Shown here: positions 5,436-61,100 of the stretch, in pieces
Position numbering within the stretch: position 1 is the first letter of the stretch
Layout: every line of letters starts with the position of its first letter
Assembly (NCBI RefSeq): GCF_000150275.1
Contig: NW_002060951.1
Location: forward strand, 2,056,297 to 2,120,296
DNA length: 64,000 nt
Source: Trichoplax adhaerens
Lineage: Eukaryota > Animalia > Placozoa
Reading direction: 5' to 3'
Program-made: the position numbers and the translations under genes
Notes under the pieces: model-generated
Database searches by the model: none
The model's input: the letters and a program-made list of their open reading frames with translations, nothing else
What the model was told of the DNA's origin: nothing

Positions 5436-5532
5436 ATTAACAGTACCGTACTGTACTGTTCTGTACAGTGTACAGTGTACAGTACTGTATACTGTACCTT
5501 CTAGCGTGTACAAACTGTACAGTACTGTACTC
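5436..5532. repeat. (TACAG/CTGTA)n palindromic low-complexity array upstream of the GOLGA3 leader
   Basis: cagtaccgtactgtactgttctgtacagtgtacagtgtacagtactgtatactgtac... Confidence 0.85.
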
Positions 5533-5671
5533 TGCAAAAACAACCTGGCAGCTCATTTGGAGCACGGTCGGGTACGATTGACGATTATCAGTTCCAGTAC
5601 TGTATAGCTGAAATGACCAGTAGAAAAATCGGCCTACTCATCGTTAGCCAACGATTGTGTCCTGTCTATTA

Positions 5672-6420
5672 GTACAGTCATAAATGAACACTATTTTAGT
5701 CCTACACTTGAAACTTACTGTACTTTATGCGCACGCGTACAGTATATGGAGGTACAGTACGTGCAATACATGATACAGTACAGTATACTGTATACTGTAG
5801 TTTTGTGCTGGCAATAGCGTACTGTACTGTATTTTATTTCTACTGTACTGTACAGTACAGTATATACTGTATATACACTGTATACAGTACAGTAGTCATA
5901 AATGAACACTACAGTACCGTATTGAAGTCCTACAGTACAGTACTGTACAGTGTACAGTACTTTATACACGTACTGTTACTACTGTACTGTAGTTTTGTGC
6001 TGGCAATTTTTGATTTGTACAGTCATAAATGAACACTATTTTAGTCCTACAGCTTGCAACTTACTGTACTGTATACGCGTATATGGAGGTACGTACATCA
6101 TATACAGTTTTTGTGCTGGTAATATTTATTTTATTTGTACAGTCATAGATGAACACTATTTAGTCCTACACTTGCATCTTAATGTACTGTACTGTATACG
6201 CGTATATGGAGGTACGTACATCATATATAGTTTTGTGCTGGCAATATATTTTATTTTATTTGTACAGTCATAGATGAATACTATTTTAGTCCTACACTTG
6301 CATCTTACTATACTGTATACGCGTATATGGAGGTACGTACAGCACATCGTATACAGTACAGTATGCAAAATCGGTAGTTACGTGCTGGCAATATTATATT
6401 CATGAATCTGTAAACGTGTA
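5672..6420. repeat. Minisatellite, ~120-bp unit, about 5 copies plus a remnant
   Basis: The unit gtacagtcata(a/g)atgaacactattttagtcctacacttg..cgcgtatatggaggtacgtac..ttttgtgctggcaat recurs at ~5672, 5890, 6017, 6137 and 6262. The first copies are expanded by TACAG repeats. Confidence 0.9.
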
Positions 6421-7065
6421 CGTAGCTGTACAGTCCATACATACAGTACATAATGGACATTCTAAGATTAAAAACCTTTCTCGTGCAGTTATCTCGGAAA
6501 GCAGTGATGCTGTTCCGATCTCTTTATATTGAACTAAATTCGACTGGTACATCTCTAGCAGTCTATTTGATACAATTTTACTTTCAAATATACACGTATG
6601 CGTGTATCTATTCTTATATTATACATACGTATATATAAATAGTGAATTATTAATACAAATCAATGATCTACACAACTAGGTATCTCAGTTTTGCCATTTT
6701 ACTGCTGTATCCGTATGTTGTACCAAGGACTTCTATGAAGTTCCTGGCTGTATCGAAAGAGTTTTACTGCCTCTAATATAAATAACAGATAACAGATAAT
6801 AGATATGATTGAAGACTTTACACATCGAGCATACCGCCTAATCAGGCGCTCATTCTTAGCCAAGAAGAACTAGTTCATAAAGACCCTGTATAGCGTATAT
6901 CGAACAAATAAGCCATGATTTCATGATTGCATAGAAATATGAGTATTAATACATCACAAATATCAAAATTGCAAGTCTGAAAAGGTTAATTTTATACACA
7001 AGTTTGAATTATCGTATCCGTCAATATCGTGTTCTTTCATACTTTATCATCAAACAGAGACCTGA

Positions 7066-9348
7066 CTATCTCACAAACGGTAATTTGGCTGACTTTTTCA
7101 GTATCTGACCCTGGCCAGAAAAAGCTTCGAATTCTTTGTCAATTGCAACGTCCTAAAATTATATTTGATATTGCACCAAGATTCTATTAAGCATATTTCC
7201 ACCGATAATGTTACCTAAATAAAGCTTACCGTATCGTCAGCCCTGTTGGCACACTTTTTAGGCCTGATAAATTTTAAATTCCCAATCTTATAATCATAAT
7301 TAGGTATGCCTCTGCTCAAAAAATGTAACACCTTCATCACATTATATAATTAACAATATCGGAAATAAACAGTATCATTTCTCCTACTATATTTACTTTT
7401 TCAATTCTTTCGGAACTGAAACAGCACTTGTAGCTGCACTTTTTTTCTTTTTACCATCTATCCTGTGTCCTTCACCTCCAAATATCTTGAATTCATCCTC
7501 ATCTTCCTCAAAGATTTCACTTTCATCTTCTTCCTCCTTTTCTTCTTCCTTAATATTTCTCTGTGGCTCTTTATAGTCAATTGGCGGGGCAAATTCAACA
7601 CTCATGTCACACTCAATGATTGACACAGCCTGGCCAGGCTTCGTTTCCATCACTAATAGCTCGTATACCTATAACCAATGATAACAATGTAAATCTTACT
7701 GCGGTCTAACATTTAGCGAACGATAAGTGCAATGCGGATCTTTACCTTATCATTGTACTTAATAGCGACAACATCTCCTTTCGTAAGACACGCAAATGAT
7801 CTCAGAGCATTCTCTAAACTATGGTGATAATAAAATGCTATCGCTAAGGATTATTTTAACTTACGTGCCATATGAAAGTATTTTAAATGATGATATCAGC
7901 AATACAGTATTATTTCGTAATAAAATTATAATAGGAGAGCAACAAAGATACACGGCTTTATGATTAGTTATATCCAGAAAATCGACAGAAAACGGCTGAA
8001 ATTTCGAATAAGTGGCCACTGGTAACGATGCGCTTTCAATACGAACTAAATCTCCCTCCGATACTAAAAGATTTCTCATCATCTGCAATAGAAGAGCAAA
8101 GCTTAAAGTCATGCAATTTAACATTACTAGAAATAATATCGCAATGTTAAACTTTGAACGCAAGTTAAAGAGTTATCATAAATGCATAGAATAGTCCATA
8201 TCCCCCAATTACTGTACGAGTGTACAATATAGGAAAACTTTACCCAATAGGGTATATACATCTTCCCCTCATCAGCAACAAATTCCAAAACACCGCAGTG
8301 AGTACTTCGATCACTTTGCTTGTTAGTAATCTTGAATAGCATCGGATATACAATATTTAGCCTGGCTGTATTTAACACAAAACAAGTTATTTTTCTCGTG
8401 GTAAAACCTTCTAAATCAAAGATTATACACTCTACAATGTACAGATTGCACGCGTTGCTAACTTTAGGTTTTGGAATACAGTAGGTTAAAATATAATACA
8501 CTATTGTATGAAACATCATTAAAGAATGAATTTACTTACTGAGAATATCAAGGGCTGAAGGTGGTAGAATTACTGGGTAAACGAAATAGACCGAATTAAC
8601 AAAAGAAATCAATTTGAAGTCGTTAGTAATTCAATATACTAATGTACGTGTATAGTCTTATTTTCAATGAAATAACACTAAGCTTACTCTTTCCTCCATT
8701 GTCCAACTCTTCACGGCTATCAGGCATCATCGAAACTGAATAACACCGTAAGCTGGTATTGTAAGAACGTGGCAATGAGCTACGAACGAATTCATACGGG
8801 AACTAGCAATTATTAGCAAAGGGAATATAGTTAGTCAGTTATAGTTAATACAATGAAAGGAAAAGCAAAATACATGTAAGAAATTGTACATACAATTTAA
8901 CAAAATGCCAGTATTTTAGCCAAGCTGGCATAAGTAATGATACACAATTTAATTATAAATTATATTTGTAGATAAACTCGGAAATTGTGCAGCATAATAC
9001 AACACAAGACCATTGAATTCGAGAAGAGTGTCACAATGAGATCAATGTTTGCAAACTATGCTATCAGAATACAAGTTTTGTTCAGTCATACCTTGCAATT
9101 TATTAGCTAAATTACAGTAAGCTTAAAGCTAGTGAAAAACTACATATTTTTGATCACAGAAAAAACAGCTTTCAAATAGAATTATACTGTTATTTATATA
9201 GAAGTTAAGATAACTTCCTTTTATTACAATGTACTCAAGATAGGATTTTTAATCATTATGATTAACGCCATTACGTGAATTCTGCTGTAACCTTCTTCAG
9301 TGAGAAGCATCACTGTAAATCGAAATACAGCGAGCCAAAACTTACCAT
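7066..9348 (-). CDS. UFD1: Ubiquitin fusion degradation protein 1 (p97/VCP cofactor), multi-exon
   Basis: ATG|GTAAG at 9348-9346. Spliced product: [110 protein letters not shown]-like [11 protein letters not shown] and FSGQGQIL; TAG at 7066-7068. Confidence 0.96.
7819..7951 (-). other. U12-type (minor) GT-AG intron in UFD1
   Basis: Donor GTATCTTT at 7951, branch-like TCCTTAGC at 7850-7843, AG at 7820-7819. Splicing gives KAV|LENALR in frame. Confidence 0.7.
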
Positions 9349-9862
9349 TCTTGAATTTTTTTTCTTTCTTCCAATTACGAGAGCCTCAGATTTAGAAGAT
9401 GTTATATGGATTATTTTACTGTATACTGTATTTATATATTAATTATATTATCGGTATGATTAAGTGCAGCATATAAAGTATTCGCATTTGATTGAAAAGT
9501 TAACAAGAGAATCCAGAATACAGTGGTAAACTAAAGTGCAGTAGGCGCAGCAGCGTACAGTACAGTATCTTTAGTAGTCTCTAGTAATACTATAGATTAC
9601 TTTACCAGTATGACTACTAAAAACAGTTCAGAACAGTACAGTACTGTAGAGTATTCGCATTACATTTTACCGTACTTACAAGACTCGCACTGCACATGCG
9701 CAGTGCGCATGATATACTGTGCATATAAATCACTGGACATTCAGTACTGTAGATCAAGTGCACTTGTGGGTCAAAATTGATAAAGATTAAAGATTATTGT
9801 AGTGTAATTAGTGTAGATACCTGACGAAATAACATTTATCATTATTCGTATGTCTTTCTAAC
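9349..9862. promoter_or_regulatory. Bidirectional promoter region UFD1/SIRT4 with a short TACAG array and an NRF1-like palindrome
   Basis: Head-to-head ATGs 514 bp apart; tacagtacagta runs at ~9555-9650; GCACTGCACATGCGCAGTGC at 9687-9706. Confidence 0.6.
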
Positions 9863-10750
9863 ATGATTTCCAATTCACGAAATCTGACCTCCTTTATACC
9901 ACATGCTCGTCAAATAACCCAAGAGGATGTTCAACTTGTTAGTGATTTCATGTTAAAATCGAAGAAGTTATTGATTTTGACTGGAGCTGGCGTATCAACA
10001 GCGTCTGGCATACCGGATTATCGATCGAAAGGTGTTGGATTATATGCACGTAGCAACCAAAGACCAATGCAATATTCGGACTTTCTGGAAAACGACGAGA
10101 ATCGGAAACGTTACTGGTCTCGTAACTTTACTGGATGGTCTCGATTTTCCTCTGTTAAGCCCAATTTAACCCATAATTTTATTGCTAAGCTCGAACAATT
10201 GAAGTTATTGCATTGGGTTGTAACCCAGAATGTGGATGGATTACATCAACGTGCCGGCAGCAGCCGACTGACTGAGTTACATGGGACTATGCACGAAGTC
10301 ATTTGCTTACAGTGCCAAAAAATTATTCTTAGACGAGAATTTCAAGACATATTATCGAAGCTAAACCCGAATTGGACAGTCAAATCTATTCAAACCGCTC
10401 CAGACGCTGACGTGTTCATTGCGGAAAATGAAGTTATGAAGTTTAACTTGGCCAAATGTGAATGCGGCGGAGTATTGAAACCTAATGTAGTATTTTTTGG
10501 CGGCTCTATCTCTAAAGATATTAATGAAGAAGTGAGACAACATGTCGATGAGGCTGATTCGATTCTCGTTGTTGGATCGTCGCTGCAAACCTATTCTGCA
10601 TATAGAATTATATCAAGGGCCAGCGACATGCGAAAGCCAATAGGTATAGTTAGTATCGGTGAAACACGAGCTGATCATTTAGCATCATTCAAAATTAGTA
10701 TAAACTGTAATCAATTGTTTGAAAATCTGCAATTGTCAGCTTATAGCTAA
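9863..10750 (+). CDS. SIRT4: NAD-dependent sirtuin, class II (SIRT4-like), intronless CDS
   Basis: GAGVSTASGIPDYRS, RKRYWSRNFTGW, VTQNVDGLH, ELHG, LKPNVVFFG, LVVGSSLQTYSAYR, IGETRAD. Confidence 0.95.
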   Translation: MISNSRNLTSFIPHARQITQEDVQLVSDFMLKSKKLLILTGAGVSTASGIPDYRSKGVGLYARSNQRPMQYSDFLENDENRKRYWSRNFTGWSRFSSVKPNLTHNFIAKLEQLKLLHWVVTQNVDGLHQRAGSSRLTELHGTMHEVICLQCQKIILRREFQDILSKLNPNWTVKSIQTAPDADVFIAENEVMKFNLAKCECGGVLKPNVVFFGGSISKDINEEVRQHVDEADSILVVGSSLQTYSAYRIISRASDMRKPIGIVSIGETRADHLASFKISINCNQLFENLQLSAYS

Positions 10751-10962
10751 TATATTTTAGCCCGTTATTTAGATGATTGGAATCTATTTTTTTAATGTAT
10801 ATATATATAGTCGTTTATAAATACTGAATACCTTAAAATATACGCTTATTTAAATGCAATGATTCATGAGCATAACAGATTGATCTAAACGCGATCTCAT
10901 GTATAGTAACTGCTTATTACAATATCCTATGGAGGATACGCGAGATAATGTAAACTGTACGA

Positions 10963-11240
10963 TACGGAATTACAGTATAATATTGCATAAAATTCAGCTT
11001 TCATAACTACAGTCAGTACCTACCTGTACCAACTAGTACCTCTACTAGCATCTGTAAGACATCTAAAATTGCGTGAAATGTGACAATTCATGGACGTAAC
11101 GTTCAAAGAATTAATCACTATACTGTACTGTACACGTGTACAGTACGGAATTAGTGTATAAAATTCAGCTATCATAGCTACCTGTGCCAGCTAGTATCTG
11201 CACGAGCATTTGTGTAGCATCCAAAAATTGCACGGAATAC
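10963..11240. repeat. Diverged two-copy direct repeat (~100-130 bp units)
   Basis: tacggaatt..ataaaattcagct(t/a)tcata..tacctgt(a/g)cca(a/g)ctagta..agcat..aaaattgc at ~10963 and ~11143. Confidence 0.75.
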
Positions 11241-12611
11241 TCATTTAGATATAGCATGCGAAATACATGTTACCTCTCATGAAAGATGGAGCTTACTATT
11301 AATTTGATCATATAAGCCAATAAAATTCGTTAACATCGTCTCAAAATATAGTGCTGCTATATTTTTATCTCTCTCTTTCAAAAGTTAAATTATATGAAGC
11401 TGTCACAGACAGAATTTATAGCTTGCATGATGCAATACGTTTTACGTTACTTTTACGGAGAATAACATGAATTTGTGAGCTGATACGTGTATATCATAGT
11501 ACAGTACAGTCTGTACCATAGACTTATACGACTTTGAGGTATTCTTGTAGAATTCTTTGTAAAAAAAATAGAAAGTGTAGACGTTATAATAGTCAATTAT
11601 ATAATTAACAGACAAAAGTGTAAACTACATTTTTATTATATAAATCTTAGATTGGTTATGCCCTAAGACTAATTATATAATTACTTTATTTTAATAATGA
11701 AATAATAATTAAAACTGATTTGTTGCTAAAATTTTACAGTGTGAGGGTTGATAAATAAATAAAACAAAATACCCTAATGCGATATGTGGATTATATGCAA
11801 TCAACTCTGATATACACGTATATACTGTATAATTTTACTTACTATTAAGTCATAATTACCAGTATATTGCATTAGTTACTGTAGACAACTAGACAATGTC
11901 TATCGTGAGTCACAGACGTACAGACAACCGACCTCGTCGATGGACTAATGGCTGAGGTGCTGTAAAATTGTAAAAACAAAATGACCTACAGTATTTATTT
12001 TTTTTATTATTTATTTTATATACTGTAGTTTAGTTTAAACAGTTTAAACCATTGTAAAAGCTAATTCGTTGAGTCACGTTACGTCATTTATTTCTTTGCC
12101 AACAGTTTCCACTAGACCACCACAGAGCCGTATCATACTGTGTACAGTACTGTACCATCTCTTCTTTCTTTAGTAACTTCGCAAGTACTTGTACTAACGT
12201 ACAGTACAGTACAGTTCTGTATATAACTTTGTATAGCAGCAAGTCTTGTATACTGTAAATCTCTACGTCATATGAGACGTCTCTAGGTTTTCTTTGTTTT
12301 AATGCCTCTAGCGTTATAAGGTACACATCGGGGAATAACGTATTGAATATAGGAAGGAGAAACGATTAGTTGGAATCCCTGCGTACACTCTGCTGGGATC
12401 AACTTACATAATAATGTGGTCGTAGAGATAAAGAAAACCTACGCTTACTACTCGGAAAAAAATGATTCCAACTTTTTTTCAGCAACTCTCCACTCGGAAA
12501 TTTATTTAATACTGTAGACCTGTTTAAATACTGTACATCAAGCTTTTCTTGCTTGGAGGGTCGAGAGTTCAGAGTTCAGTGCCTCCACTGCACTTAGCCT
12601 GCTTTCAGCTT

Positions 12612-12830
12612 GCTGTACAGTACAGTACTGACACAGGTACTGTACAGTGTACAGTGTATGTACTGTACTGTACATGTACAGTACAGTACAGTACGATAGC
12701 ACGTGTACAGTACTGTACACTCTACAGTGTACAGTACACTGTTCTGTACAGTACACAATAACGTTGCCAGGGCAGAAAAGTACTGTACTGTACAGTACTG
12801 TGCGATGTCTACAGTAGTGTACCGTAAATA
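12612..12830. repeat. (TACAG/CTGTA)n array upstream of the NLK leader
   Basis: Dense tacagtacagtactg/gtactgtactgtac tract. A smaller tract lies at ~12135-12220. Confidence 0.9.
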
Positions 12831-13520
12831 GTTTTTCAAGGTTTAGTATTAATTTCGCGTCTTATCGTAGGAATTGTGCACTATTGGCGGAGCTGATTAA
12901 CGTTCACCGTCATATAGGAGGAGGAGGCAACTGCCGAAAACTGGAAAGGGTCTAGCATTGATTTTCCGCTGACACAGATCTGTAAAAGTAGTTGTTTGGA
13001 TAATAGCTGTGGCCCTTTGCAGTTATTCCTATTAATTTGTAGTATCGACGTTAGCACTTACTACAGAAAACGCAATCATGACTATCCGCGAGCACACTAA
13101 GTAAGGAAGACAGGATAACCATCGATCGACGCTGTGGTGGTTACGGCTTATCTTTAACTTTGATAATTTCAAAGCCGGGCCATTGTGATTTTGTGGTTAC
13201 AAGATTGCCGTTTCCTCACTAGTCAAATCGATTCTTTGGGACTGTTTCTTACCTTTTCATCTATCAACGACGACAATTTTACTTCCTTACTGTCCTTCAA
13301 GGCTTTTTTGTACAGTTTTTTTCTATATTACTCGCGAATTCCTTCATATTTGGATATCGAAGTGAAGAGAGTGACGCTTGGTAGAGTGTAGACTCTTGGT
13401 TATACGTGCGTAAAGATATCCGCGTGTACTTCCGTTGCAACGCTAATTCTTCGATATTCATTCTGTGGTTTCTATCAACGAAATAGCGACTGAGTAGCGC
13501 ACCTTCACCATATTCAGATC

Positions 13521-19261
<5,741 letters not shown>

Positions 19262-20766: not shown

Positions 20767-20780
20767 GCTACCATGGCAAC
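20767..20780. promoter_or_regulatory. RFX X-box upstream of STYXL1
   Basis: GCTACC-AT-GGCAAC, with a perfect GGCAAC half-site, ~220 bp before the ATG. Confidence 0.65.
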
Positions 20781-30153: not shown

Positions 30154-38203
<8,050 letters not shown>

Positions 38204-38443: not shown

Positions 38444-38725
38444 CATACAGTACAGTACAGTACTACAGTATACCGTACAGTGTACAGTACAGTTAACTAC
38501 AGTGTACGTACTGTGGAGCAGGAGTGCGAATCAAGCTTATCCCGCCAGAACTACAGTCTGTACTATACAGTGTACAGTACATACTGTACAGTACAGTATA
38601 CTGTACGGTACTGTACTGTACTGTACAGTACAGTACTGTACAATACAAATTCTACAGTGTACAGTACAATTTCGAGTTCACTGGACTGGATTGGACGGAC
38701 TTGACGGACTAGACTGGACTGGACC
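38444..38725. repeat. (TACAG/CTGTA)n array plus (GGACT)n tail in the CHD1L/DRG1 bidirectional promoter
   Basis: Dense tract at 38444-38670, followed by actggactggattggacggacttgacggactagactggactggacc at 38680-38725. Confidence 0.9.
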
Positions 38726-38878
38726 AGCATGGAATCTCGGGACTGACCAGCAACCTTGACGATTTTGCCGTATTGGTTCGAGAGGTCCATGCCTTGAAGA
38801 ACAATTGAGGAGACATTTCTTCAATCCTGGTCACTCACTTCCCAGGCGTATATTTTGTATCTTTGATTTGAACACATC

Positions 38879-41714: not shown

Positions 41715-42397
41715 GAAATTAGTAGTTGTTGCTTGACAGAATAGTACATTGACGCAGTTTCGTTGTTCTTTTGTAACTAACATATCTCATTTTTTACATG
41801 TGTAGAATTTAAGAATGGATAAGAAAGATTTACATGTACAAAGATGAACATACGCAATAAAAGAAATTTAATTCTATGATTTCCTGCTTCCTATTATTTT
41901 TTTAGTGAACTATAATATTCATTGTAATTATATATTAACATTCCATAATTACCGTCAAAATAAAGTTTTACATTGCATTGCGATGAGCACTTTTTGAAAT
42001 ATGTTTCATTGCTAACAAATTGGTTAACACTATTAATTTACAACACAATAGTAATTCTTAATTAGACATAACAGTAAAATCGAACCGTTACCAACATAGA
42101 TCCCCTAATAAAAGATCACAGCACGGTATAAAAATTTGGATACAAAAAATGAAAGAAAGTCGCTTGATGTTGGATTATAAAAACATTTGGACGCGTATTA
42201 TCGCTTCAATAAATACGGATTTGTTAAACAATTTTCTGGAACGGTGCAACTGATATATATATATATATACAGTATATATACAAATTGTGCCTAGCAGTAA
42301 ATGTATTTACAACGTCTAACTGAAAGCAGAGCTCAGAAATGCATTATATAACTTTTGTACACAATCGCATTATATTTAAACAATCAATCCGCAAAAT

Positions 42398-45300
42398 CTA
42401 CTTTGAAATATTCCTAGGTGATGACTCTTGTACGATGCTGAACATGAATTGCAAGCATCCTAATCTAATATGGCTGCCATGACGTATGACAGCCGTTCCT
42501 TCCCATCCGGCTCCTGCGCTTTCATTTAAAGTACTAGTACTAGTAGACTTGTTACGGTTGCAGTCACAAGGTTTCCAAGGATCCTTTTCAGGAAAAGGTA
42601 CCATTGAAGGTTTCTTTGAAATACTATTTAGTTTTCTTTCAGCTGAAGAAACGCCACACGACTTTATGACCTCTTCTTGGCTTGAAAATGTCTTACGATT
42701 TTTCACAGAAAAGTCACACCCGTATAAAATACTATCCACGAACGTTCCATGTTCGCTATAGTTCAACAATTCATACTGTTTTGTAATCTATTAATTATAA
42801 CGGTGAAATAATAAACGAATTAATTTAACAAGAAAAGATAATGTAGAATACAAGATCGAGATTACCGATACAACAATGTCTACAATACCTTATCATAAAA
42901 TATACAAGCATGCTTCGAGGACACAAAATTACAATGTCCATACTTATATACTGCTACATCCATATCAGCTCCTAAAGAGAAAGTTATTTTAAGCTGGAAA
43001 GCTCGCTGAAATGAGTATAACGAAAAAAATGCCTTTACGTGTAACTCTATTCGCAACATTACCAACCTATTCCCATCGTAAGAGATTTATTAACCATTGG
43101 TATTGCAGCTCCGATACCGTTTAAAGGGCAGATAAGAGCTCGGCAATAAGGGCTCTCTTAAATTTTAGATAAAATATAATACGCATAGCTATTACTTTAT
43201 CATCCACTACAGTACTACGATTTCAAGTTTTAACAACCTATACCTGAAATCATATTGTTGACACTATTCGTAGCAATTTGCATCTACATAATTAAGTGTA
43301 ACAATTCAGTAAAATATTTTAAAATATAAGGTACACCGTATTGATAAAGCAAGACTGTCCCAAAATATATATATATACCTTAACATCCATAGTGTTAGGA
43401 AACAACTGATTTAGCCGTTGTAAAGCTAAAAGCTTAAGCATCGATTCATCAATTAAATCTATATAGAATTTAAAACACAGTACAACTTACTGACCAGGAA
43501 TAACTAACAAGTTTTGAGCTAACATGAATACATCATAATTAAAATTAAAAGTAAGCTTTTGTTATGAAACCCACCAGTAACTTCGGATCTAGTTTTAGTG
43601 TCGTGGCTTGTATTATTATTTCCTTCTTTAATGACGTTTTGTAATTCGATATAATTTATGAGTACTGAGTCATTCTTTGAAACAAATTTGTTAATATTAA
43701 AGTTACTTTTATTTATATTCTCCGTTGTTGTGACCAGTTCTTTCTGTACACTACTTCGTTTATTTGTGTTATCTGAAATCGTACAATTATTTGAAATGAC
43801 AGCTTCATTGTCCTCTTTTGCAGAAACTGAAATAATCTTTTTGTCATATTTCTCTTCATCCAAAATACCATTAGAAAGAACCTTATCTATATTCTGATTG
43901 TTGTTATCCAATTTGCTTGCTGTTATAGCTTCTGCTATTCCTTCATTGTTATTTGCTTTTACAGAACTGGAGTTTCGTGCATTCACCTTGCCAGAGTGAT
44001 GTTCTTTAGCAATTGCAATTTGGAAGTTGACTATATTCTTTAGCCACTGTTTAATGGTTAAGAAAGCATTGAGGAATATAATCACTTTTTTTATACCTAT
44101 AATAGTAAAATAAGTAGTCTAACGAATTATGAATCTATCTCAACCTCTTCGGACTCTTGATTAGTAGTCTGAGCTTCAGTAGATTCAATCCCATCAGCTA
44201 AAAATGCTCGTTTTACAGTAAGAGTCCGAATAGGGTTTAACTCTTTAAGTTCCTTTGGTGGTGATAAATAATTCTGTTTAACCATTTCAGGAACCTTTCA
44301 AATCGAAATTAAAATAAAATACGGAATAAATCATACATCATTAAATTAATGACAGTTTTTCTCGATTCGTAAATAATCGGAAAATAGACTTTGAACTAAA
44401 TACTTTGATAACAGAAGACTACCTTAATAGCTTTTCGGAGTGGGTATTTCGAACTTCTTTGAAATGGTGGTCGATTGCTGAATAGTATAAATTCCACTAT
44501 CAGTATTAGTTTTGCATCGGCAATCCTACACGAATACAGTACAGTAATATCTGGAAATTTTCCAAAATTAGCCAAAATTACCGGTGGACATTTTCCAAGA
44601 AGTCTAACATCACCGCATGTTGGGAAAGCGAATCATTCAGTTTATAGTATGCATCAAAACGGCGACTAATCCTTGAATCTTGCATTGCGGGCTAAATTTA
44701 GCAAGTTATAATTTAGGCTTTAGTTGGCATGTAGAACTGGTTATCTATTTTATTTTAAGCTCAAACCGAATAGCCATAACTTACTAGAAAGTGTTCTGCG
44801 TGATTAGGACACATCCATAATCCTGATGGAGTCGTAGTTAGGGGAGGATCCATACAATCCAGATGAAAAGATAACGGACAATAATCACAATGTATCAGCG
44901 GTTTTAAAAAGCTGTTACCTCTACAGCACCCATAAAATAATCCGAAAACGTTTAAATTAGTAACAATAATGCCGAGCAATTGAATACCACAATATAATAT
45001 GATCACATTTAAAAACAATAAAACGCACTCTGAGCAGTAGTAACATAATCGTAACGGTCTAACGGTAACGTTGGTAGGTGGTTGGGCAGATGAACTTTGT
45101 CTTTTAGAAAAACAATAAATTTGATTAATAGTCACATAATTTGGTCACCAGTTGAAAATTTTTAACAATTTGCTAAAATCTTGATGATATTATCAATTAA
45201 TTTTATTAATAACAAGGTTACAAGTATTTCTTAGCAATTACGACCAAATCCATCTTCACCAACCTTCGACCACCTTTAGTCGCTGAACCGTGCCCGTTAG

Positions 45301-46823
45301 ATTTCTTGCGTTTCTTAGAGCCTAATAATTATAGAATTAATTGAAACTTAAGTGCGTAACGAAGTCTCTTCTAATTATTATTATCTATTACCAACTTTCT
45401 TAGTAGCAGGTAGCCATAAATATTTATCTTACGCGTAATTTACTTTCTACCGTAGTTTGGAGCAAAATTATATTGTATACTACAGTATAGTACCAGGTAA
45501 TGGAATGTGATATTGCATCTCTTTAGGTAATCGAAATTCGGACGGGTTCTGCTTCACATTATCTTTTACTAAAACTGCAAACGGTGATCGTAATTCCGAC
45601 TGTTTTGCAATCGGCCTAGTATTGTCCTACATTTTTAGGATAGATCAGTGAAACAGTTAAAATCAATCATAATTGCTCTAATCATCTGTAGATTTTTAGT
45701 CGTAAGAGACCAAAGATTTTAAACAAGCGTTTCGATGCGCAATCGCTAAATAATGTGGAGTAACACCTGATATTCGGCTTTGCATTTTTTACAAATCCAT
45801 TCACCAGCAGGAATTCCGTCTTCATCTAGTGGTGGATCACTATAGTGTCAAAAATTACGTTAATGTGTATGAAACTAAGGACTACATAAGTTATATCCCT
45901 GTAAATGGAAAGGCATTCGTACGGGCAAAATAGCAATCCGTCAAAAAGTTATTGCATAGATACCCCAGTTTAAATATAGTACTGAGTATGGACCACCAAT
46001 ATTACAGTAAAAACTCGCATTATTGAAAGGCGAAATTAGAGATTGAAAAAGCTAATGAACTAAAGTGGCTGAGAATAATCGTTGATATATCTTACCAACA
46101 GTGAAGGTGGAATGCTGATGGACATCTTTCACAGCATAGCAAGTCACCACCTTCATTACAACTGTCGCAAGTATCATTATTAAATGATCTTCCACTTCTT
46201 CGTACTTCTCGAACAACTTTTCGATTTAATTTCTTGCTATCATCATCTGACTGTGGTGGCCTTGTCAAGGCACGAATTTGCTAGATGAAAGAAAAATGTC
46301 CATAATTAGTAGATATAAAACGATGAGCAGAATGGATAGGTATATTACGAACTTGTCCTTAAGTTGACCATAATACTATATACTGTACAGTACTATTTTT
46401 AAGTGGGGTATTATGAACAATTTGTCATTTTTTTGAGTGATGGATAAATTCTGTCGTCAAACTTGTTTATGCGATAATTATAATCGAACAAAAACTGAAG
46501 TCCCATCGACTATATGATCATATTCGTGAAAAAAAAGTGAACGACAAGTTCTACCAAACACTTTATCCTACGTATGATTTAATCAATCGTAAATCAACGG
46601 GCGATTATCATCCATTAACTACCGATGGACAATTGTGCATTCAGGAGAATTGATACTGATGAGGCTAAGAGATCGTTGATGCTCTACAACAAATGTACAA
46701 AGTATTTAAAGTACCCTACATAGAGCAAAACTATCATATCCAATTTGCAACTTATATCGATCAATCATTCACGATTGGAGTTATTCGATAACTTACATCC
46801 ATAATCTCAAAATGACTTTCCAT
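42398..46823 (-). CDS. PHF12: PHD finger protein 12 (Pf1; two PHD fingers, C-terminal FHA-like region)
   Basis: IMD|[54 protein letters not shown]; second [32 protein letters not shown]; [52 protein letters not shown]. Confidence 0.94.
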
Positions 46824-46924
46824 GATGCTTATATCTTAAGGCACGAATGGCTTCGCTTTTAACACATGAGAAGCTGAGGAACTCAATTTGATTTTAGTTG
46901 AGCAACTGAACCGCCGAAGTTATT

Positions 46925-47148
46925 TCTGTACGATACACTGAGTATACCGTACAGAACAGTACAGTGTACAGTACAGTAGCAAGTACTGTACTGATAGACC
47001 TGAGAAAGGTTCGGTTCGGGGTAGACCGTTACGATCTATATAAGAACCGTTCTCAGGTCTAACTGTACAGAACTGTATGTACAGTACAGTACGAGTGCAC
47101 TGGACGGTGTAGCGTAGACTACAGTATGTAGTACTGTACACTGTACGG
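46925..47148. repeat. (TACAG/CTGTA)n array in the PHF12/NSRP1 bidirectional promoter
   Basis: gtacagtgtacagtacagtag..gtacagtacagtacgag..gtactgtacactgtac between ATGs 396 bp apart. Confidence 0.85.
46995..47061. mobile_element. 67-bp inverted-repeat element (mini-MITE-like) embedded in the promoter array
   Basis: TAGACCTGAGAAAGGTTC ... GAACCGTTCTCAGGTCTA: 18-bp arms with one mismatch and a 31-nt spacer. No clear TSD beyond the terminal TA. Confidence 0.5.
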
Positions 47149-47219
47149 AGTGTCAGTCGTTTGTGCAGTTTCGTATTCGGACCGACCTGCACAGACTGCA
47201 CAAGTAGAGCTAGCTAAAC

Positions 47220-50200: not shown

Positions 50201-50372
50201 TAATAACAAGAAGAATGATACTATTGCAACGGAAGTTTCATCTGAAACCAAACAGACAGTGTTTGACCGCCGCAATGTTACGGACACAGTATCAGCTGCA
50301 CGTGAGAGATACTTAGCTAGAAAAAAAGCTAAAGACTCCGTAAAAGCGATCTTCGATGACGACACGAAATGA
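47220..50372 (+). CDS. NSRP1: Nuclear speckle splicing regulatory protein 1 (CCDC55)
   Basis: MAAKGSKK|YGLI.., AKAEDPTVFEYDSIYDE, RK|PKYIASLMKSAELRKREYERMTERKIQKEREAEGDKFQDKEAFVT, DVKKQSDLSGFYRHLLN, VSAARERYLARK. Confidence 0.94.
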
Positions 50373-51255
50373 ATTCACTTCAGATCCAGTTGCTAGGTTT
50401 TAGTTAACTTTGGATAATACGTACACTTTTATGCGACTATGTCTCGTTATAGTCGTTGCAATCGATATCATGTGTGTGCGGTTTAATGAACTATATCCAG
50501 CGATACCACAGTAATCTTTTCAGACTATTTGCTTTTACAATAAACATCAATGTCGCAAAGGTAGTTGCTAAATATAGATAATTAATTAATTAATTTATTA
50601 TATTGTATTCATATTATCTACATTTAGTATATTATAGTTTAGAATTTTTAGTAACACATTTCCTGTTTGTAATGTACTATGTAAAGCCAGATATATCTCA
50701 TATACTGTAATCTATTGGTTAAAAATAGTGCAATTTGTATAATTTTTAACAAGCTGTACATTTTAAAATAAACTTCACCATTGGTGACTTACGGTATTAC
50801 CTATAATTTCTGTTAGTTCACTGATATCAATGAATACATTTGACATTAAGCGCGTATGCCGCATACATTATAGATCACGGGATCATGATCATACGAATAA
50901 CAAATCTATCTCATCATTGTACTGATAGTTTCCTATACGTCTTATGAATACAGTACTTTTTTCAGCTATATATATTAATTATTGATACTTGATTTACGCA
51001 ATCTTAAGCCAAAGGGAAAAGGATATTATAAACGGATCGAGAATTTTAAAATATGAATACATGCTGCTTTATGCAGTACGAAGCTACTACTAATGCACAT
51101 GGCATAACATCGAAATAATATCGGCATTTATACCGTATTAATTAATTATATGATTATCAGTTTACTGGAGTGCAGGACAGTGCTACAGCAGCAGCTACGA
51201 GTCTTTGGATGATATTGGTCTTGCAGAAAAGTGGCCAAAAGTAAGGGATGAGAAT

Positions 51256-52716
51256 TTAGAACATACCAATGTTAGTTGCTATCTCTCTCGTAGTCGTATT
51301 TCGGAATCGTTTCTGGTGAAAAAGAAATGTTATTATCTCATAAGTACTTAATTTTAAACAGTACACTGGTGACAAGGCAAGATAATTAGCAGTTAGGCTC
51401 GGCTGACTGTGCAAAACAAATTATTTGACAATAACGTAGACATATAAAATTATCACGTAGCTCTAAATTCTACAGTAATACTGTACTGTTAGCAACTATG
51501 GCATATAAGTTACTGACCACATCGGGTTGCATTTTATCTTCTTCAACGTATTTTCGCTTCGCCACAGGGCACTGACCCGTAGACGGGCTATATACATAGA
51601 AAAAAATAACAGACTATTCAAAACTCATTCACGTTATCAATACTTAGGCCTACGCTATTTAAAGCTTCGATTTAATGAGTACTTTTCCAGTAACCGTTGA
51701 CTTAATATTTGCTAAGATCGATGTTAGCACAGTAGTAGACCTAGAATTTCTCAATACTGCAATTTCATATGCTACAGTATATACTCTCGTATTACATGAC
51801 GCATGCAAATGAACTTGTAATTTGAAAGCCTGGCCTCAACTACAGACTTTATTACATTTACTCTTTGGGATCAACCTAGATCCAGTCATCCAGTATTGAA
51901 CAAGCATCAAACGCAAGCGTGCATCAAACAGAAAATTAAAAACTGGGTTCAGTACGAGGTAAACATTGATTCGATTTGCCTCGATCAATGCATGAAGAAT
52001 CAAGACAAACTAGGGATCAGTATGTACTTTACCGAACTGAAAGGTATTGAATTGAATTAAATTTATTAATTAACTTTAACAGGAAACTTGTAAACAGTAA
52101 ATTTGGCGAATACTCGTATTGTATGACAGTATATAACTATATATATAATATACCATACACGCAGTCACAGCAATAGCAGGAGCCTCTCAGGACTGCAACG
52201 CGATTTACAATTTACCACTAATAATAATAATATATAATTAACCAAACATTATATCATTAGTAGTAATTAAATAAATAAATTAATGAAAGAGCGCGTTAAT
52301 CTAGTGCACAGTACTGCTGCTGCACTACAGTACAGTATATATACAGTCTTAATAAATGTGCATTTTACACTTTTACAGTACAGTACAGTATGTTCCTGTA
52401 ACTGTTTCATGATTTGCACTCTTCAATTTATTTTCTTTTCTTATTTATTTAACTTAATCAGTAAAGTCAAGTGCTAAGCTTCCAGTTAACTTAAAGAGGT
52501 TGTATTCAGGCAAGTTGCTGTTACCTGCTGTTACTGTATCGTTAAGAAATGCAGCCTTAATTAAATCAACTGATCCCTGTCATGTTAGTAATTAGCGATG
52601 ATTTATTATTATCATTTTACCTCGTCTGAGCTGATGCCACTGTCAATAATAGCTGATTTTGGATAAAATTACATCGTTTGTACAGCTCGCTATAATGACT
52701 AGCACGAGATTCCATT
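51256..52716 (-). CDS. Possible small orphan spliced gene (or lncRNA) divergent from SRRT
   Basis: Candidate exons with splice sites: MESRASHYSELYKRCNFIQNQLLLTVASAQTR|gtaaaa (52716-52621); STTVLTSILANIKST (51740-51695); PSTGQCPVAKRKYVEEDKMQPDV|gtcagt (~51588-51518); accag|KRFRNTTTREIATNIGMF*. One junction phase is unresolved and no homology was recognised. Confidence 0.3.
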
Positions 52717-52774
52717 TTGATCTCGAAAAACTTAACGGTTACCGTAATTTCACCGTTGTTGAGGGATTTTAAAC

Positions 52775-53040
52775 CTTGTACACTAAATGTACAGTACAGT
52801 CCTGTACGCAAAGTACTGTACTGTACTACAGTATACTGTACAGTACTGTTGTAGGTATTTTTACAGTACCGTACAGTACTGTATAAACTTGCAAGTCCGT
52901 CATACTGTACTCTACTACGCTTATATTAAACTCTTCTACGTTACATGCGCCGACTGTCTGTCCGTCACTGCCGTCATTTTCCAAAATAGCGCTTTTTCAG
53001 CAAATGGCCTTGACGTATTTTACTGTACTGTACAGTATAG
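52775..53040. repeat. (TACAG/CTGTA)n array upstream of SRRT
   Basis: Dense tract at 52775-52915 and a short one at 53020-53040; smaller tract at 52310-52390. Confidence 0.85.
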
Positions 53041-53452
53041 CGTCAACGCAGCCATGGGCTACTAAATATGCCCTTACAGATGCAGGGCCACACTGTTACA
53101 CCTCTGTGACATCGCACTCCAATGTCATCACTACTGTAATGTACTGTACTAACAACAAGCAAAAACTAACAGCCTTCAGTATAGTATATATTGTAGCGCA
53201 AGTCGGTTGACTAGCACGGTTCTTTGTTAGGTGCGTTCGCGATAACTAGTGTACGAGTAAAAGGCAGACATGTAGATAGATTTTACTTTATGCAAGGAGA
53301 AGATTTCATTGAATTTAGCTGAATATTACTGCTAGCTTTGTATAGCTGTAATTTTATTAACAAATATTACTTTCTACATACTCTTATTATGCCTACAATC
53401 ACAGTTTCTGCATGTGGCAGAAGTGAAGAAGCTTAACTAAAATCCAACCAAC

Positions 53453-56400: not shown

Positions 56401-59101
56401 GATGATGAAAATGATAGTAAACGGAGCGAAAATCTTGATATGAGCAAGGTATGCAGATATTCTTTTGGTTCGTAATAGTGATGATAACTTACAACGAATG
56501 ACCTAACCAACTAACCACTGTACACTATACAGCGAGTCATGGACTATTAGGCCATCTTGTTAATTCATATTAACTCATGTGGTTGGTTAGTTAATTAGGT
56601 CAATTGGCTGTTAGTTGACATCACTAGTTTACAATTTGAGGGATACCTAGCATTAATTTTGAAATAATTAATAGGTTGCCTTCATGTTATATTTAGCAAT
56701 ACATGCATTTGCTTAATAAAATATTTTCCCAATGGAATATTCTTTAGAATTCTAACAGCAATGAAATAGGTGACGTCAAACGTAGAAAATTTCACAAAAA
56801 TTTATCGATATTTTTGCGAAATTTAGCACCAGTTATCTCAAAGACTGATATCGAATCGGTGTGACATTTAATTAATATGCCTTTCATATCTTTATATTAA
56901 TCTCTTTTCTATGTTGTATATTCTATATTATTTCTATCAGATCTAGGAAGACTTAACTTTTACCTTCATTTATTAGGTAGTTTCCCAGTATGAAGGTTTT
57001 ATTCGGGTGGCTGTTGGCGAAGTAATGCCAGATAAAAGGTAAGGAGATTTTAAGTTTTAAGTTGCATTATATGTTAAAGATTTCTTAACAACCTAATGAT
57101 TAGTAATTTTAATAGATTTTACAGACATGCTTGGGCTACTTTTGAAAGTACTGTCGATATTAGAGAAACTTGTAATAAAATCAACGGGTCAAAAGTTTGT
57201 ATCTCTTTTTAGTTTACTTGAATGATACAGTACGGATACTAGTTACTGATTCTTTAATCATTATTTGTTTTAGATTCGCAAGTTTGAATTGTATGCAACT
57301 TTAAATAGGGAGCTTAATCGTCGTATACGTTCGATTGCTGGTTATGCTGCGCATAAACCTTGTGTAGAAAATGACATTATGTTAGCATCAAAGCTAGCAA
57401 AATTCTTAGATAACAAATATTCGTTATGGATTAGCGAAAAGGTATAATTTGAATAAGATTATTACTAGGAACAATGTTAATTCCTCCTTTGTAACGTAGC
57501 AGGCAATTATGGTATTCGAACACAAAAATTAAATGAATATAATATCAAATTATTTTTAGAAACATCCAGAACTGCTGGCTTTAAACTATGAGACTAATCC
57601 GATTTTAGAAAAGATCGATAAACTAAGCCTGCCAGAAAGCGAAGAATTGCAGGAAGATGAAGATAGCAATACGGAATATGACGTAGATGTTAATAAAGAT
57701 CTTCTGCAGGTATGGAAACACCAGTTTTATTTATACTTCGCATAATTTGTTCTATACATAATGGAGTTTTAATTGTGATACAGGTATTGGATCGACTACT
57801 CCTGTATTTACGCTTAGTACATTCAGTCGATTACTATGGTGGTTCTGAGTATATTTATGAAGACGATATGCCACATCGTTGCGGCATATTGACAGTTCGT
57901 GGGAAATCAGCTCCAAAAATACAATATAAAGAAAGTGTGTATTATTACTATGATATGATATTTTAATGCCTCAGTTGTTACCAGGTTATTTATCTGTTTA
58001 AGATATTAGTGAATGTGCGGTGTATTAGATCATTAACAATCTAACATTTTCGTACTTTATATCGAACCTAGTTAAATATTGGAAAGATAGTATGGCCAAA
58101 AAAACAAGTCCTCGATTTCAAGAGCCACCAGCTCGTTTGACTGACAAAGAGTGTGAACAGTTAGGATCAAAAGATCCGGAAAAATATCCTCTACAGTTTC
58201 ATGATGTTGTTTATTATATGATATATATATAATCAACTAATGATATATTTTCAGTTTTGTTACAAATAAATTCCTTAACCACATAGCTACGGAAGTGGAA
58301 GCTTTCATTAAAGAAAATACTAAAGAGCTATCGTCAGAAAAATGGTTATGTCCATTAAGTGGTAAAAAATTTCGTGGCCCTGAATTTGTAAAGAAGCACA
58401 TATTTAATAAACATTCTGATAAAGTCGATGAAGTGCGGGCTGAGGTATCATTAAGTTACGACGAAAGTATAGGTTACTTTTAGATATTATCTACATACAG
58501 TAGTATAGATCCAATTCATTATCTTTCTTCTGATACCATATTTTAAAATACAAGTTCAATTTTATTCAAGGTTGAGTTCTTTCATAACTTCTTGCGAGAT
58601 CCTAATCGCCCGGAGGAAGTCGAACCTAGTCTTAACAGACGTTCTGGTACAGGAAATGCCAGAGGACCACCTCCTCCACCTTTGGGTTGGCCGCGCCCTA
58701 TGAACTGGGGTCCACCTGTTCAGCCGCCATTAATGATGAATGATGGTTAGCGCTTGCAGTTTTTATGTATATGATTTGGTGAAAATATTGATACAAACTT
58801 TCTTTGATCACTGGGTTGTATAAAACAATCTTGATTGAATTTAAAATTTCAGGGAGAAGGCCTCCTTTCGGATCTTATCCGGCAGCTCCGCCAATGACTC
58901 CTCGTATGAGGCCATCTCCATCTAGCAGGTACCAATTATATATCTCGTGTAAATGACGTTCTTTCTAGTACGTTTTCATAGTTATTTATTACACAAAATT
59001 ACATGAATATCCATATAATATATTTTAGGCATCGATCTGATCCAAGAAAACTTCTCAATTATCATGATCTTGATGCTCCAGATGAAAATGATCTTTATTA
59101 A
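53453..59101 (+). CDS. SRRT: Serrate RNA effector homolog (Ars2), multi-exon
   Basis: [160 protein letters not shown]; TAA at 59099-59101. Confidence 0.96.
53893..54115. repeat. Diverged two-copy ~120-bp direct repeat in an SRRT intron
   Basis: gattcatgat..caatag..tcat(c/g)aagtat..aagtagctttc(a/g)atac..gtaat(a/g)catttttagat repeated. Confidence 0.75.
56476..56626. mobile_element. Degenerate MITE (hAT-like ends) in an SRRT intron
   Basis: Ends TAGTGATG.../...CATCACTA with ~45-bp imperfect arms (TGACCTAA..AACTAACCAC versus GTGGTT..TTAGTT..TTAGGTCA). Flanks gttcgtaa / gtttacaa resemble a decayed 8-bp TSD. Confidence 0.6.
58184..58290 (+). other. U12-type AT-AC intron in SRRT
   Basis: Donor ATATCCTC at 58184, branch TTCCTTAAC at 58271-58279, AC at 58289-58290. 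Join gives DPEK|[10 protein letters not shown] in frame. Confidence 0.92.
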
Positions 59102-60537
59102 TTGAAATACTTTTAGAATATTAATGATGCCTTTAGCCTATCACGACTTTTCGATTCCTATAACCAACCTGTTATGTTTTTAGAATGTTGTTCTTGTAAG
59201 ACGTTACTTCTACGCGTATACGCAATCAAGCAATACATAAATTTGTAGCTATAATCTTCACATGAGAGAATATTACTATGTACTGCTCTTTCCAGTAATG
59301 ATATGTGCATCATTCGAAATTTTATTATACGATAAAACATTAAAATTGAAGTGCAACATAAAATTGTCTCATGTTTTAACATCAGATACTGATCGGAAAC
59401 TCAAAATACTTATACATATGACATTCTACGAGCATGTTTTTATTTCTAGGGTATTCTTTTTTTGGGCACTATTGCATATTGACCTTCAAATTATGATCTG
59501 TACAAGATGGAGTTCTATTCATAAACAATACAGAGGAGGGATTATAACTATCTACTCTAGCCATAGTTGTTAATTAGAATGTTATTAGTCATCAAGATAA
59601 CAATGAGTGTAAGCAAGATTTGCGAATTAGGCAAGCAGCAGCATAACATCTTGAGATTTTAATTATTATGACAGGTATTACTATTTCGCCTTTGAACTAT
59701 ACACTTATTATATTATATTTATGAGCCATAATCATGACGTGCACGACTTGTAGAGTGACGTATGACTAGTCATAACTAGCTCAATACATTTACGTACATT
59801 AATATTGGCGCTACATGAAATTATGATACTGTAAAATCACTTGTGAACAGTAGGCAAAGACGGTCATTTACTATGGCTTTAAGTAGCAAAGCTTAACCAC
59901 ACTTTTTAGTGGTCATCTTGCTCATGTCATTCCTCTTGATATGATGAACCTGCTCAGGTCAAGTTTGTAATGATTAAATAATCTAGAATGTTTTGCGATG
60001 ATTTACTTATTGACACCAGCAATACATGATTTCAAATCAATGTTTACGTTTAAACTTGAAGGGGACTATCTAATGAACATTGCACGTATATGTGAACAAT
60101 CATTCATTCAATTTTTGTTATCTCCAGAGTCACAAAGACATATAGACTGCAAATTAACAAAAAATTATAAAATTTCAACAATTTTGTAAAATGAAGTAGT
60201 GCTGTATACAGTATTTAAAAACAACATTCTGTATGGTATGTGTATTCCTTGAACGTCAGTATAGTAAACTTCCCAATTTTCAATATGATACAGTTTGTGA
60301 GTTATAAATGTATATATACTGTACTTATATATAATTAATTAACAAGTACTTGGTATATCATTTGTACTTGCGTATGGCAGTGTGCAAATAAGCTGTTACT
60401 TTTATGGCTTTCTGTCGTTCAACAGTAGGATAAAATAAACGAAGCTTAAAAAGTGCTTTTGATATCTTTAATTAAAAGTCTTGATTAATGTTGCATTTTT
60501 TAGTGGTAGTTTGTCTGTCTGTCTGTAACCTTTCTTT

Positions 60538-61100
60538 ATACTGTACTGTACAGTGTACAGTACTATACAGGACAGCACTTACTGTACTTTACATTGTACT
60601 GTACAGTATAGTACTGTACTGTACAGTAGTTCATGATTGTGCATTACACGGTATAAAGTTACTGAACCTCTGACAGGTCTACGACAAATGGTAATACCAT
60701 CTGTTAAATGAGCACATTATCGTAAAGGAGTTTACACTAGTACTACACAAAACGAAACCAATCTAGCAGCTAATTTGGACATCGATCACGGACAGTGCAA
60801 TGTACTGTTACAGACATATGATTCACTTAAAATTGGCAGTAAAATAATCAGCCTCCATATTATGTTATTAGTACTGTACCTTGTTGTCAACAACTGTTAG
60901 CAGTCATATTTCTTTCTTCTTTTAGTAGTCTGTGGTCTCACAGTCATTCATTTTACACTGTACAGTACAGTGTACAGTACAGTACTGTACAGTGAGTGTA
61001 CTGTACGTACAGTACAGCGTACAATGTACAGTACTTTACAGGCCTTTACGTACTGTAGGCCGTTACACTGTACTGTACTGGACAGCGTACAGTACCGCAC
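60538..61100. repeat. Two (TACAG/CTGTA)n arrays upstream of CCDC43
   Basis: Tracts at 60538-60630 and 60955-61100. Confidence 0.85.

Follow-up and report, generated by a model that had tools for sequence, protein, structure and literature searches.

Within a 64-kb window of the Trichoplax adhaerens genome (the whole stretch of DNA analysed here), tracts of interleaved TACAG and CTGTA pentamers stand upstream of most genes, which raises the question of what these tracts are and whether they act at the promoters beside them. The first half of the question is answered by the literature. The tracts are copies of (ACAGT)n, the dominant microsatellite of the T. adhaerens genome, which is concentrated just upstream of genes (Wang, Zhang, Meyer and Bao, 2010; Biol Direct 5:18; PMC2871265). 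In that survey, pentanucleotides made up 61.8% of 11,697 perfect SSRs and ACAGT 78% of those; the first 1 kb upstream of genes accounted for 54% of ACAGT copies and the first 5 kb for 85%, with upstream GO enrichment for translation, ribosomal proteins, and kinases. ACAGT was also the commonest pentamer motif in ESTs and was proposed as a transcription factor site (PMC2871265). ACAGT and TACAG are cyclic permutations of each other, and the window arrays share with this microsatellite the genome, the exceptional abundance, and the upstream bias: the unit is ACAGT/ACTGT, thousands of copies occur in the genome, and within the window the strong arrays lie no more than 1 kb upstream of genes. The preliminary description of this DNA had presented a candidate promoter “system”; its motif, abundance, upstream bias, and transcription factor idea had all been published in 2010.

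The pattern resurfaced in 2025, and what is given here is locus-level detail, not discovery. The survey of 2010 considers perfect repeats only, whereas the present analysis adds a GTAC-phased reading with A/T strand switching, RNA-supported placement between divergent starts, a contrast of gene classes, and one case from another placozoan. The same repeating ACAGT motif was recovered by Chimaera, a CNN applied to Trichoplax Micro-C data, and its in-silico insertion altered the predicted contact maps; this is a model prediction that does not extend to locus-level anatomy or mechanism (bioRxiv 10.1101/2024.11.14.623548). Literature naming the motif letters together with Trichoplax yielded nothing beyond the papers cited here.

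Anatomy of the repeat

The most fitting description of the array is (GTACW)n, in which a palindromic GTAC recurs every 5 bp and one A or T fixes the strand. In the window, 87 GTAC-to-GTAC intervals measure 5 bp, and TRF reports periods of 5, 10, and 15 with the units GTACA and GTACT. Of 132 GTACNGTAC words, 127 have A or T as the spacer base, so that G or C is far rarer than neutral point mutation would leave. A single A/T change makes the unit its own reverse complement; the interleaving of strands and the palindromic junctions noted earlier, which were indeed found (ACAGTACTGT 12 times, ACTGTACAGT 19 times, and CTGTACAG 24 times), therefore follow from the unit itself. The array reads alike from either side. 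The arrays are nevertheless imperfect and variable in length, being interrupted by 7-bp variants, and they have no conserved internal sequence, fixed length, or definable ends; different arrays have unrelated flanks. They give rise to many inverted-repeat pairs of 20–50 nt, 30–450 nt apart, which consist of the repeat unit and fit in many registers.

Distribution of the arrays in the window

Gene identities and strands are confirmed by Pfam matches of single ORFs (UFD1, SIR2, kinase, DSPc, SNF2, PHD, and SERRATE/Ars2), with exons searched one by one; the start exons of DRG1, CHD1L, NSRP1, the “orphan” gene, and CCDC43 were taken from translations. The long coiled-coil gene on the minus strand, earlier named GOLGA3, gave coiled-coil matches only. 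No Rfam match was found in the whole window.

TACAG occurs 238 times and CTGTA 199 times in the window; base composition predicts about 65 of each, and second-order Markov simulations give about 246 for the two together. With a cluster defined as at least five matches to either pentamer and gaps of at most 40, the window contains 14 clusters, and simulations contain about 0.1 per window. All nine strong arrays (9/9) fall in 5′ intergenic spacers, which make up ~9% of the window, and within it they lie 75–550 bp 5′ of start codons or no more than ~75 bp from the 5′ ends of RNA contigs, these ends being those of assembled contigs, in which repeats cause breaks and which do not locate a TSS. For this window the arrays are thus, much as had been proposed, a mark of 5′ intergenic regions that does not depend on orientation.

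Upstream of the coiled-coil gene, an array with 10 matches (5451..5529) shares its intergenic region with 31 matches at 5718..6142 that are carried by a ~123-bp minisatellite (about six copies, 5650–6400), the unit of which matches nowhere else in the genome; the 123-bp unit at 6009–6260 was considered as a transposon and rejected, its copies being local only. The divergent UFD1/SIRT4 spacer (9553..9755) holds only three mini-clusters of 2–3 units, at 9553–9570, 9633–9655, and 9742–9755; UFD1 RNA contigs end at 9565, inside a mini-cluster, and SIRT4 contigs start at a mini-cluster, at 9728–9755. The latter run from 9728/9755 to 11185–11361, continuous with the SIRT4 coding sequence, and the SIRT4 3′UTR (AATAAA at ~11318) includes a 28-bp array at 11120..11147 and scattered array units; a cluster is located at 10955–11056. 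A strong array with 21 matches (12613..12826; cluster 12613–12814) lies ~70 bp 5′ of the NLK exon-1 RNA contigs, which begin at 12888–12921, and ~150 bp from a weak transcript (11773–12460). The 5′ ends of UFD1, SIRT4, and NLK contigs all lie within ~75 bp of tracts. Tracts of 58–90 bp are found in the weak transcript (cluster 12200–12257), in an NLK intron (medium array, 16754..16843, 6 matches), and within the “orphan” gene body on the minus strand (medium array, 52326..52400, 7 matches).

The window scan found no array cluster from 16843 to 38446 or from 38664 to 46926. The STYXL1 promoter has no array, and the convergent junctions STYXL1/CHD1L and DRG1/PHF12 are free of clusters, both as described earlier. 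The earlier account of arrays outside promoters holds for these junctions; the tracts in the SIRT4 3′UTR, the NLK intron, the “orphan” gene body, and the weak transcript depart from it. In the center of the CHD1L/DRG1 spacer (ATGs at ~38185, minus, and ~38879, plus), two arrays with 8 and 16 matches span 38446..38664 (clusters 38446–38502 and 38552–38664), and an (ACTGG)n tract follows at 38680–38724. The PHF12/NSRP1 spacer (ATGs at ~46823, minus, and 47221, plus) also has two arrays, with 6 and 8 matches (46926..47145; clusters 46926–46990 and 47063–47145). They flank an inverted 18-mer pair of a dispersed element beginning TAGACCTGAGAAAGGTTC (46995..47061), the 31-nt spacer of which contains a TATA-like CTATATAAG. 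A dispersed ~50-nt element, separate from the arrays, is found between arrays at two promoters of the window. Between the “orphan” gene (ATG ~52716, minus) and SRRT (ATG 53453, plus), a strong array with 12 matches (52790..52909) is situated ~75 bp 5′ of the former ATG and 545 bp 5′ of the latter, with mini-clusters at 53020–53040 and 53130–53150 in the same spacer; SRRT exon 1, used as a query, gave no matches. Two strong arrays occupy the SRRT-3′/CCDC43-5′ intergenic region, one at 60523..60626 (12 matches) and the other at 60958..61092 (16 matches), ~285 bp 5′ of the CCDC43 start exon (ATG ~61376).

Six of the seven sites listed in the preliminary description are true tracts, of 57–200 bp; the site at ~9555 consists of 2–3-unit clusters. 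The placement of arrays in head-to-head spacers and upstream of GOLGA3, NLK, and CCDC43 is likewise upheld by the nine strong clusters, with 2–3-unit clusters only at UFD1/SIRT4.

Abundance, gene classes, and conservation

In the genome searched (105.6 Mb, 1,414 contigs, 33% G+C), (GTACA)3GTAC occurs 2,599 times and five in-phase units occur at 2,688 sites; the reversed controls gave 0 in both cases. None of 30 GPCR loci (~113 kb scanned) has an array; arrays are present at 5 of the 30 Ras-family loci and, within the window, at 11 of 13 genes, the last figure being biased by the choice of an array-rich window; the contrast between Ras-family and GPCR loci is weak when taken alone (p = 0.05–0.11). 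The suggestion that a cell-type-specific gene class would be devoid of arrays agrees with their absence from the GPCR loci, and this fits the upstream bias and the enrichment of GO terms for kinases and ribosomal proteins published by Wang et al. (2010; PMC2871265). A mark of nearly every promoter, as was first claimed, fails genome-wide, with arrays at ~15% of Ras-family loci and no GPCR loci.

A comparison of orthologous promoters had also been suggested. In another placozoan, the Rab39 orthologue has an array ~235–290 bp 5′ of the ATG; the coding sequence is 84% identical at the nucleotide level, and the remaining upstream DNA is unalignable. The comparison gives a single case of an array kept (n = 1). 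The contig of the SIRT4 orthologue contains isolated units only, has no UFD1 homology upstream, and is uninformative.

Proposed role of the arrays

From the sequence anatomy, the adjacency to RNA 5′ ends, the absence from GPCR loci, and the upstream array of one orthologue, which are direct observations, we infer a role of the arrays in protein binding and chromatin opening, and possibly in looping. It is proposed that copies of the ACAGT microsatellite act as a putative promoter-proximal, orientation-independent platform for a candidate sequence-specific factor, to which we assign a probability of roughly 0.55. An array would offer the factor many identical short sites in either orientation near a promoter. 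The bound factor would keep promoters open at genes that are broadly expressed and often arranged head to head, and the arrays may add to the promoter–promoter contacts in placozoan Micro-C maps.

Two known systems resemble the arrays. The (GA)n elements of Drosophila, bound by GAGA factor at promoters and tethering elements, can serve as many-site platforms and open chromatin, and have been linked to promoter–promoter contacts. Like the arrays, they are short tandem repeats at promoters; however, the sequence differs and the reader is known there, and this is an analogy that does not imply homology. The CpG islands of vertebrate housekeeping promoters are similar in length to the arrays, orientation-independent, located at broad-expression promoters, and often common to divergent pairs, but they are defined by their composition and tied to DNA methylation, whereas the arrays consist of a defined 5-bp repeat within a genome of 33% G+C. 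A microsatellite that marks a promoter class in a very simple animal would be a compact system for housekeeping promoters without CpG islands and a natural one for promoter-hub formation without CTCF.

Several observations that count against a platform are those expected of a neutral by-product, namely a slippage-prone, near-palindromic 5-bp microsatellite that would arise and grow preferentially in open, transcribed, nucleosome-free promoter DNA and have no role of its own. The arrays are imperfect, of widely varying length, and interrupted by 7-bp variants; the active divergent UFD1/SIRT4 promoter has 2–3 units only; tracts occur in the SIRT4 3′UTR, the NLK intron, and gene bodies; and one block is carried inside the local 123-bp minisatellite. 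The single cross-species case (n = 1) and the weak Ras–GPCR contrast also limit the argument for a platform. We nevertheless consider a neutral by-product unlikely, as 127/132 spacer bases are A or T, the Rab39 orthologue has retained its upstream array in spite of unalignable flanks, ~113 kb at 30 GPCR loci is entirely free of arrays, and in-silico insertion alters predicted contact maps.

The CAGT core of each unit resembles the metazoan initiator. Present on both strands, it could make the array a dispersed bidirectional start-site zone and not a platform for an upstream factor. The ends of the UFD1 and SIRT4 contigs at mini-clusters agree with this, as do the many RNA contigs from other loci with array sequence at their ends, the Rab39-orthologue contigs, 4/4 of which begin in the array, and the frequency of ACAGT in ESTs (PMC2871265). 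However, assembly by itself would place contig ends at repeats, the NLK contigs begin ~70 bp past the array, and the unit agrees with the initiator consensus in its core and not in its flanks, which makes such a zone improbable.

A purely structural effect, in which nucleosomes would be kept out, or cruciforms extruded under transcriptional supercoiling, by the 5-bp phase of GTAC or by self-complementarity and without a specific reader protein, is in our estimate slightly more improbable. Single-strand folds of four arrays reach −31 to −45 kcal/mol (z-scores −4.1 to −6.9), and two control stretches from convergent junctions give z ~0, but this in silico hairpin potential is an automatic consequence of the unit, and some arrays are one-stranded and lack a partner arm (38446–38502, with 8 TACAG and 0 CTGTA).

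Transposons and promoter hubs

The preliminary description also mentioned a link of placozoan promoter-hub loops to a transposon-TIR motif. Kim et al. (2025; Nature 642:1097; PMC12221973) reported that hub promoters have a motif in common with “Mutator TIRs”; their repeat calls came from EDTA, a structure-based pipeline. Like the arrays, this motif is promoter-located, conserved across placozoan species, and associated with housekeeping, linearly clustered genes, ~1/3 of all genes. Its letters are given in a figure only. It apparently differs from the array motif, as the Chimaera preprint equates it with an “ACGG” repeat and gives ACAGT an entry of its own (bioRxiv 10.1101/2024.11.14.623548). 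Membership in a Mutator-type transposon was rejected, since the four MULE-transposase (PF10551) loci in the genome have neither arrays nor TIRs and the arrays lack fixed ends and internal sequence; a MITE or other non-autonomous DNA transposon was rejected as well, the inverted pairs being the repeat unit, the array flanks unrelated, and the 123-bp unit without another copy. That the arrays are, or derive from, the Mutator TIRs of these hubs and serve as loop anchors is the least probable reading, even though their inverted-repeat pairs could pass as TIRs in such a pipeline and the separate ~50-nt element lies between arrays; besides the MULE loci and the separate “ACGG” motif, the 6 MuDR fragments and 0.13% TE content found by Wang et al. 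(PMC2871265) speak against it.

The published “Mutator” link deserves re-examination against these arrays. It may be suggested, tentatively and with considerable doubt, that the primary sequence determinant of housekeeping promoters and hubs in placozoans is the GTAC-phased array and no transposon, via a dedicated putative factor, and that the hub “Mutator TIRs” would largely be these arrays, a G/C variant of them, or a small inserting element, seen through a structure-based repeat caller. Strict (ACGG)3 occurs 3 times in the genome and ACGGTACGGTACGG 90 times, hence the motif of Kim et al. may belong to the same GTAC-phased repeat as its G/C variant. The window itself contains one ACGG dimer, at 38693.

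Arrays in the window and their relation to genes

The window contains 238 copies of TACAG and 199 of CTGTA, where base composition predicts ~65 of each and second-order Markov simulations give ~246 for the two combined. These matches form 14 clusters of at least five, versus 0.1 per simulated window, which confirms the arrays of the preliminary description. Nine of the clusters are strong (at least eight matches): 5451-5529, 5718-6142, 12613-12814, 38446-38502, 38552-38664, 47063-47145, 52790-52909, 60523-60626, and 60958-61092. All nine lie in 5′ spacers, although these make up only ~9% of the window, and the distance from array to start codon is 75-550 bp; within the window, the proposed promoter association is borne out. 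No cluster of at least five matches was found in 16843-38446 or 38664-46926, so the STYXL1 promoter and both convergent junctions are array-free, as had been claimed. The array described at ~9555 stands only in part, as units are present there but merely in three clusters of two or three.

The gene calls were made on single, unjoined exons. Pfam searches of single ORFs identified UFD1 (-), a SIR2 protein (+), a kinase (+), a dual-specificity phosphatase (+), an SNF2 helicase (-), a PHD protein (-), and SERRATE/Ars2 (+), and the start exons of DRG1, CHD1L, NSRP1, PHF12, CCDC43, and the “orphan” gene were taken from translations. A 295-aa ORF is 100% identical to SIRT4 of Trichoplax sp. H2.

Transcript evidence came from assembled contigs of four runs placed over 8000-13999. 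Three runs are RNA-like, with GT..AG joints; the fourth covers introns evenly and thus behaves as DNA. The RNA contigs place UFD1 exons (-) at 8000-8082, 8244-8365, ~8540-8572, 8688-8802, and 9346-9565. The last of these, exon 1, is apparently nearly all 5′UTR, the start codon being apparently its final three bases (9348-9346), followed by a 543-nt intron. SIRT4 RNA (+) runs from 9728/9755 to 11185-11361 and includes a 28-bp array at 11120-11147; an AATAAA at ~11318, close to its end, fits the RNA contig ends. Its 3′UTR also holds a tandem duplication of ~190 bp (10960-11260). NLK exon 1 (+) extends from 12888-12921 to 13677 and includes a ~640-nt 5′UTR, its start codon lying near 13530; over 8000-13999, contig depth is by far greatest on this exon. 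Weak RNA coverage was also seen at 11773-12460; this transcript, missing from the earlier gene list, contains an ORF at 12087-12365 (-) with no Pfam match and lies head-to-head with NLK across the array at 12613-12826.

Genome-wide abundance and gene classes

The arrays are a rediscovery of a published repeat. Wang and co-workers reported 11,697 perfect microsatellites in T. adhaerens, 61.8% of them pentanucleotides, and ACAGT accounts for 78% of the latter (Wang et al., 2010; PMC2871265). In the same work, ACAGT repeats lay upstream of the nearest gene at a distance of up to 1 kb in 54% of cases and up to 5 kb in 85%. Translation (ribosomal proteins) and protein modification (kinases) were over-represented among genes with ACAGT, and a transcription factor-binding site was proposed as a possible role. 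The promoter association in the window fits these genome-wide figures. In the 105.6-Mb genome searched (1,414 contigs), there are 2,599 matches to (GTACA)3GTAC and 2,688 sites with five in-phase GTACW units, and neither reversed control gave a match. Many unplaced 1-2-kb assembly contigs (e.g., C100, C200, C207, C801, and C868) are filled with ACAGT arrays, which makes it probable that the repeat broke the assembly and that assembly-based counts are underestimates.

Arrays are present at 11 of 13 window genes. Among the best 30 Ras-family loci, an array lies upstream in four and downstream in one, versus none within 1.5 kb either side of the best 30 GPCR (PF00001) loci (Fisher p = 0.05-0.11). 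The window genes, an ascertained sample, differ from the GPCR loci with p = 1e-8.

At the single-exon Rab39 gene of T. adhaerens (locus L010), arrays end 418 bp upstream of the ATG. Its closest relative (92% protein and 84% coding-DNA identity) was found on four Logan contigs, all of which begin inside an ACAGT/ACTGT array, 235-290 bp upstream of the ATG; similarity to T. adhaerens is undetectable in the DNA between array and ATG. Judged from sequence, the source would be a different placozoan species. Upstream of a SIRT4 relative (75% identical), units are isolated, resembling the weak T. adhaerens SIRT4 site.

Possible functions of the arrays

The arrays are most likely a many-site, orientation-independent platform at promoters of broadly expressed genes, read by a putative factor. 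They might instead be neutral, a by-product of slippage in open chromatin. At the cluster sites, Tandem Repeats Finder detects periods of 5, 10-12, and 15-17 and units including GTACA and GTACT; (GTACW)n is the best description of the repeat. Neighbouring GTAC cores in the window are spaced by 5 bp in 87 cases and by 7 bp in 13, the latter being the GTACAGTGTACAG variant. GTACA and GTACT in phase are reverse complements, and a single A/T difference reverses the strand of the unit, which explains the “interleaving” and palindromic junctions with no need for inversions. The inter-core base is A in 71 cases, T in 56, C in three, and G in two (window plus ~234 kb of other loci of the same genome). 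This rarity of G/C, despite transitions normally being the commoner mutation, hints that the ACAGT/ACTGT word is under constraint.

A second rival is an initiator array. The 5′ end of UFD1 RNA extends to a mini-cluster of array units and NLK exon 1 RNA begins ~70 bp past its array; contig ends cannot fix the TSS, because assemblies break at repeats. A purely structural element was also considered. The arrays contain many inverted-repeat pairs of 20-50 nt, and their single-strand folding gives z of -4.1 to -6.9 against shuffles, versus ~0 for two control stretches, in favour of this explanation.

A further rival is a transposon relic. The genome has only four MULE-transposase loci, and none carries arrays. 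Kim et al. (2025; PMC12221973) described promoter hubs formed by about one-third of placozoan genes, which are housekeeping genes in linear clusters; the hub anchors carry a motif that also occurs in TIRs annotated as “Mutator” by EDTA. Transposon content is only 0.13%, with six MuDR fragments (Wang et al., 2010; PMC2871265). Self-complementary ACAGT arrays may be a kind of structure that TIR-based callers would report. The Chimaera preprint (10.1101/2024.11.14.623548) describes two repeating Trichoplax motifs, ACGG and ACAGT, and equates ACGG with the transposon motif that Kim et al. reported. The TIR motif mentioned in the preliminary description is probably a different, possibly related, repeat. 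Since (ACGG)3 occurs three times genome-wide but ACGGTACGGTACGG 90 times (control 0), “ACGG” and ACAGT may be one GTAC-phased repeat, with “ACGG” as its G/C variant.

Other repeats near the arrays

A local minisatellite at 5650-6400 comprises about six copies of a ~123-bp unit, each with ACAGT units, and no further genome copy of this unit was found. Immediately after the CHD1L/DRG1 arrays lies an (ACTGG)n-like pentamer tract (38680-38724), inside which is the sole ACGG dimer of the window (GGACGGAC, 38693). A second dispersed element, beginning TAGACCTGAGAAAGGTTC (its start is also cited as TAGACCTGAGAA), was observed at 46995-47061 and 60664-60681. Its 12-mer core has 125 exact genome matches (control 5), its 18-mer has 74 exact matches and 439 with up to three mismatches (control 64), and the copies share a consensus of ~45-50 nt. 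It may be either a long site for a factor or the small TE/TIR from the promoter-hub work of Kim et al. About one-quarter of its sites have ACAGT units within ~30 nt, and two copies in the PHF12/NSRP1 spacer make up a unique inverted pair flanking the TATA-like CTATATAAG.
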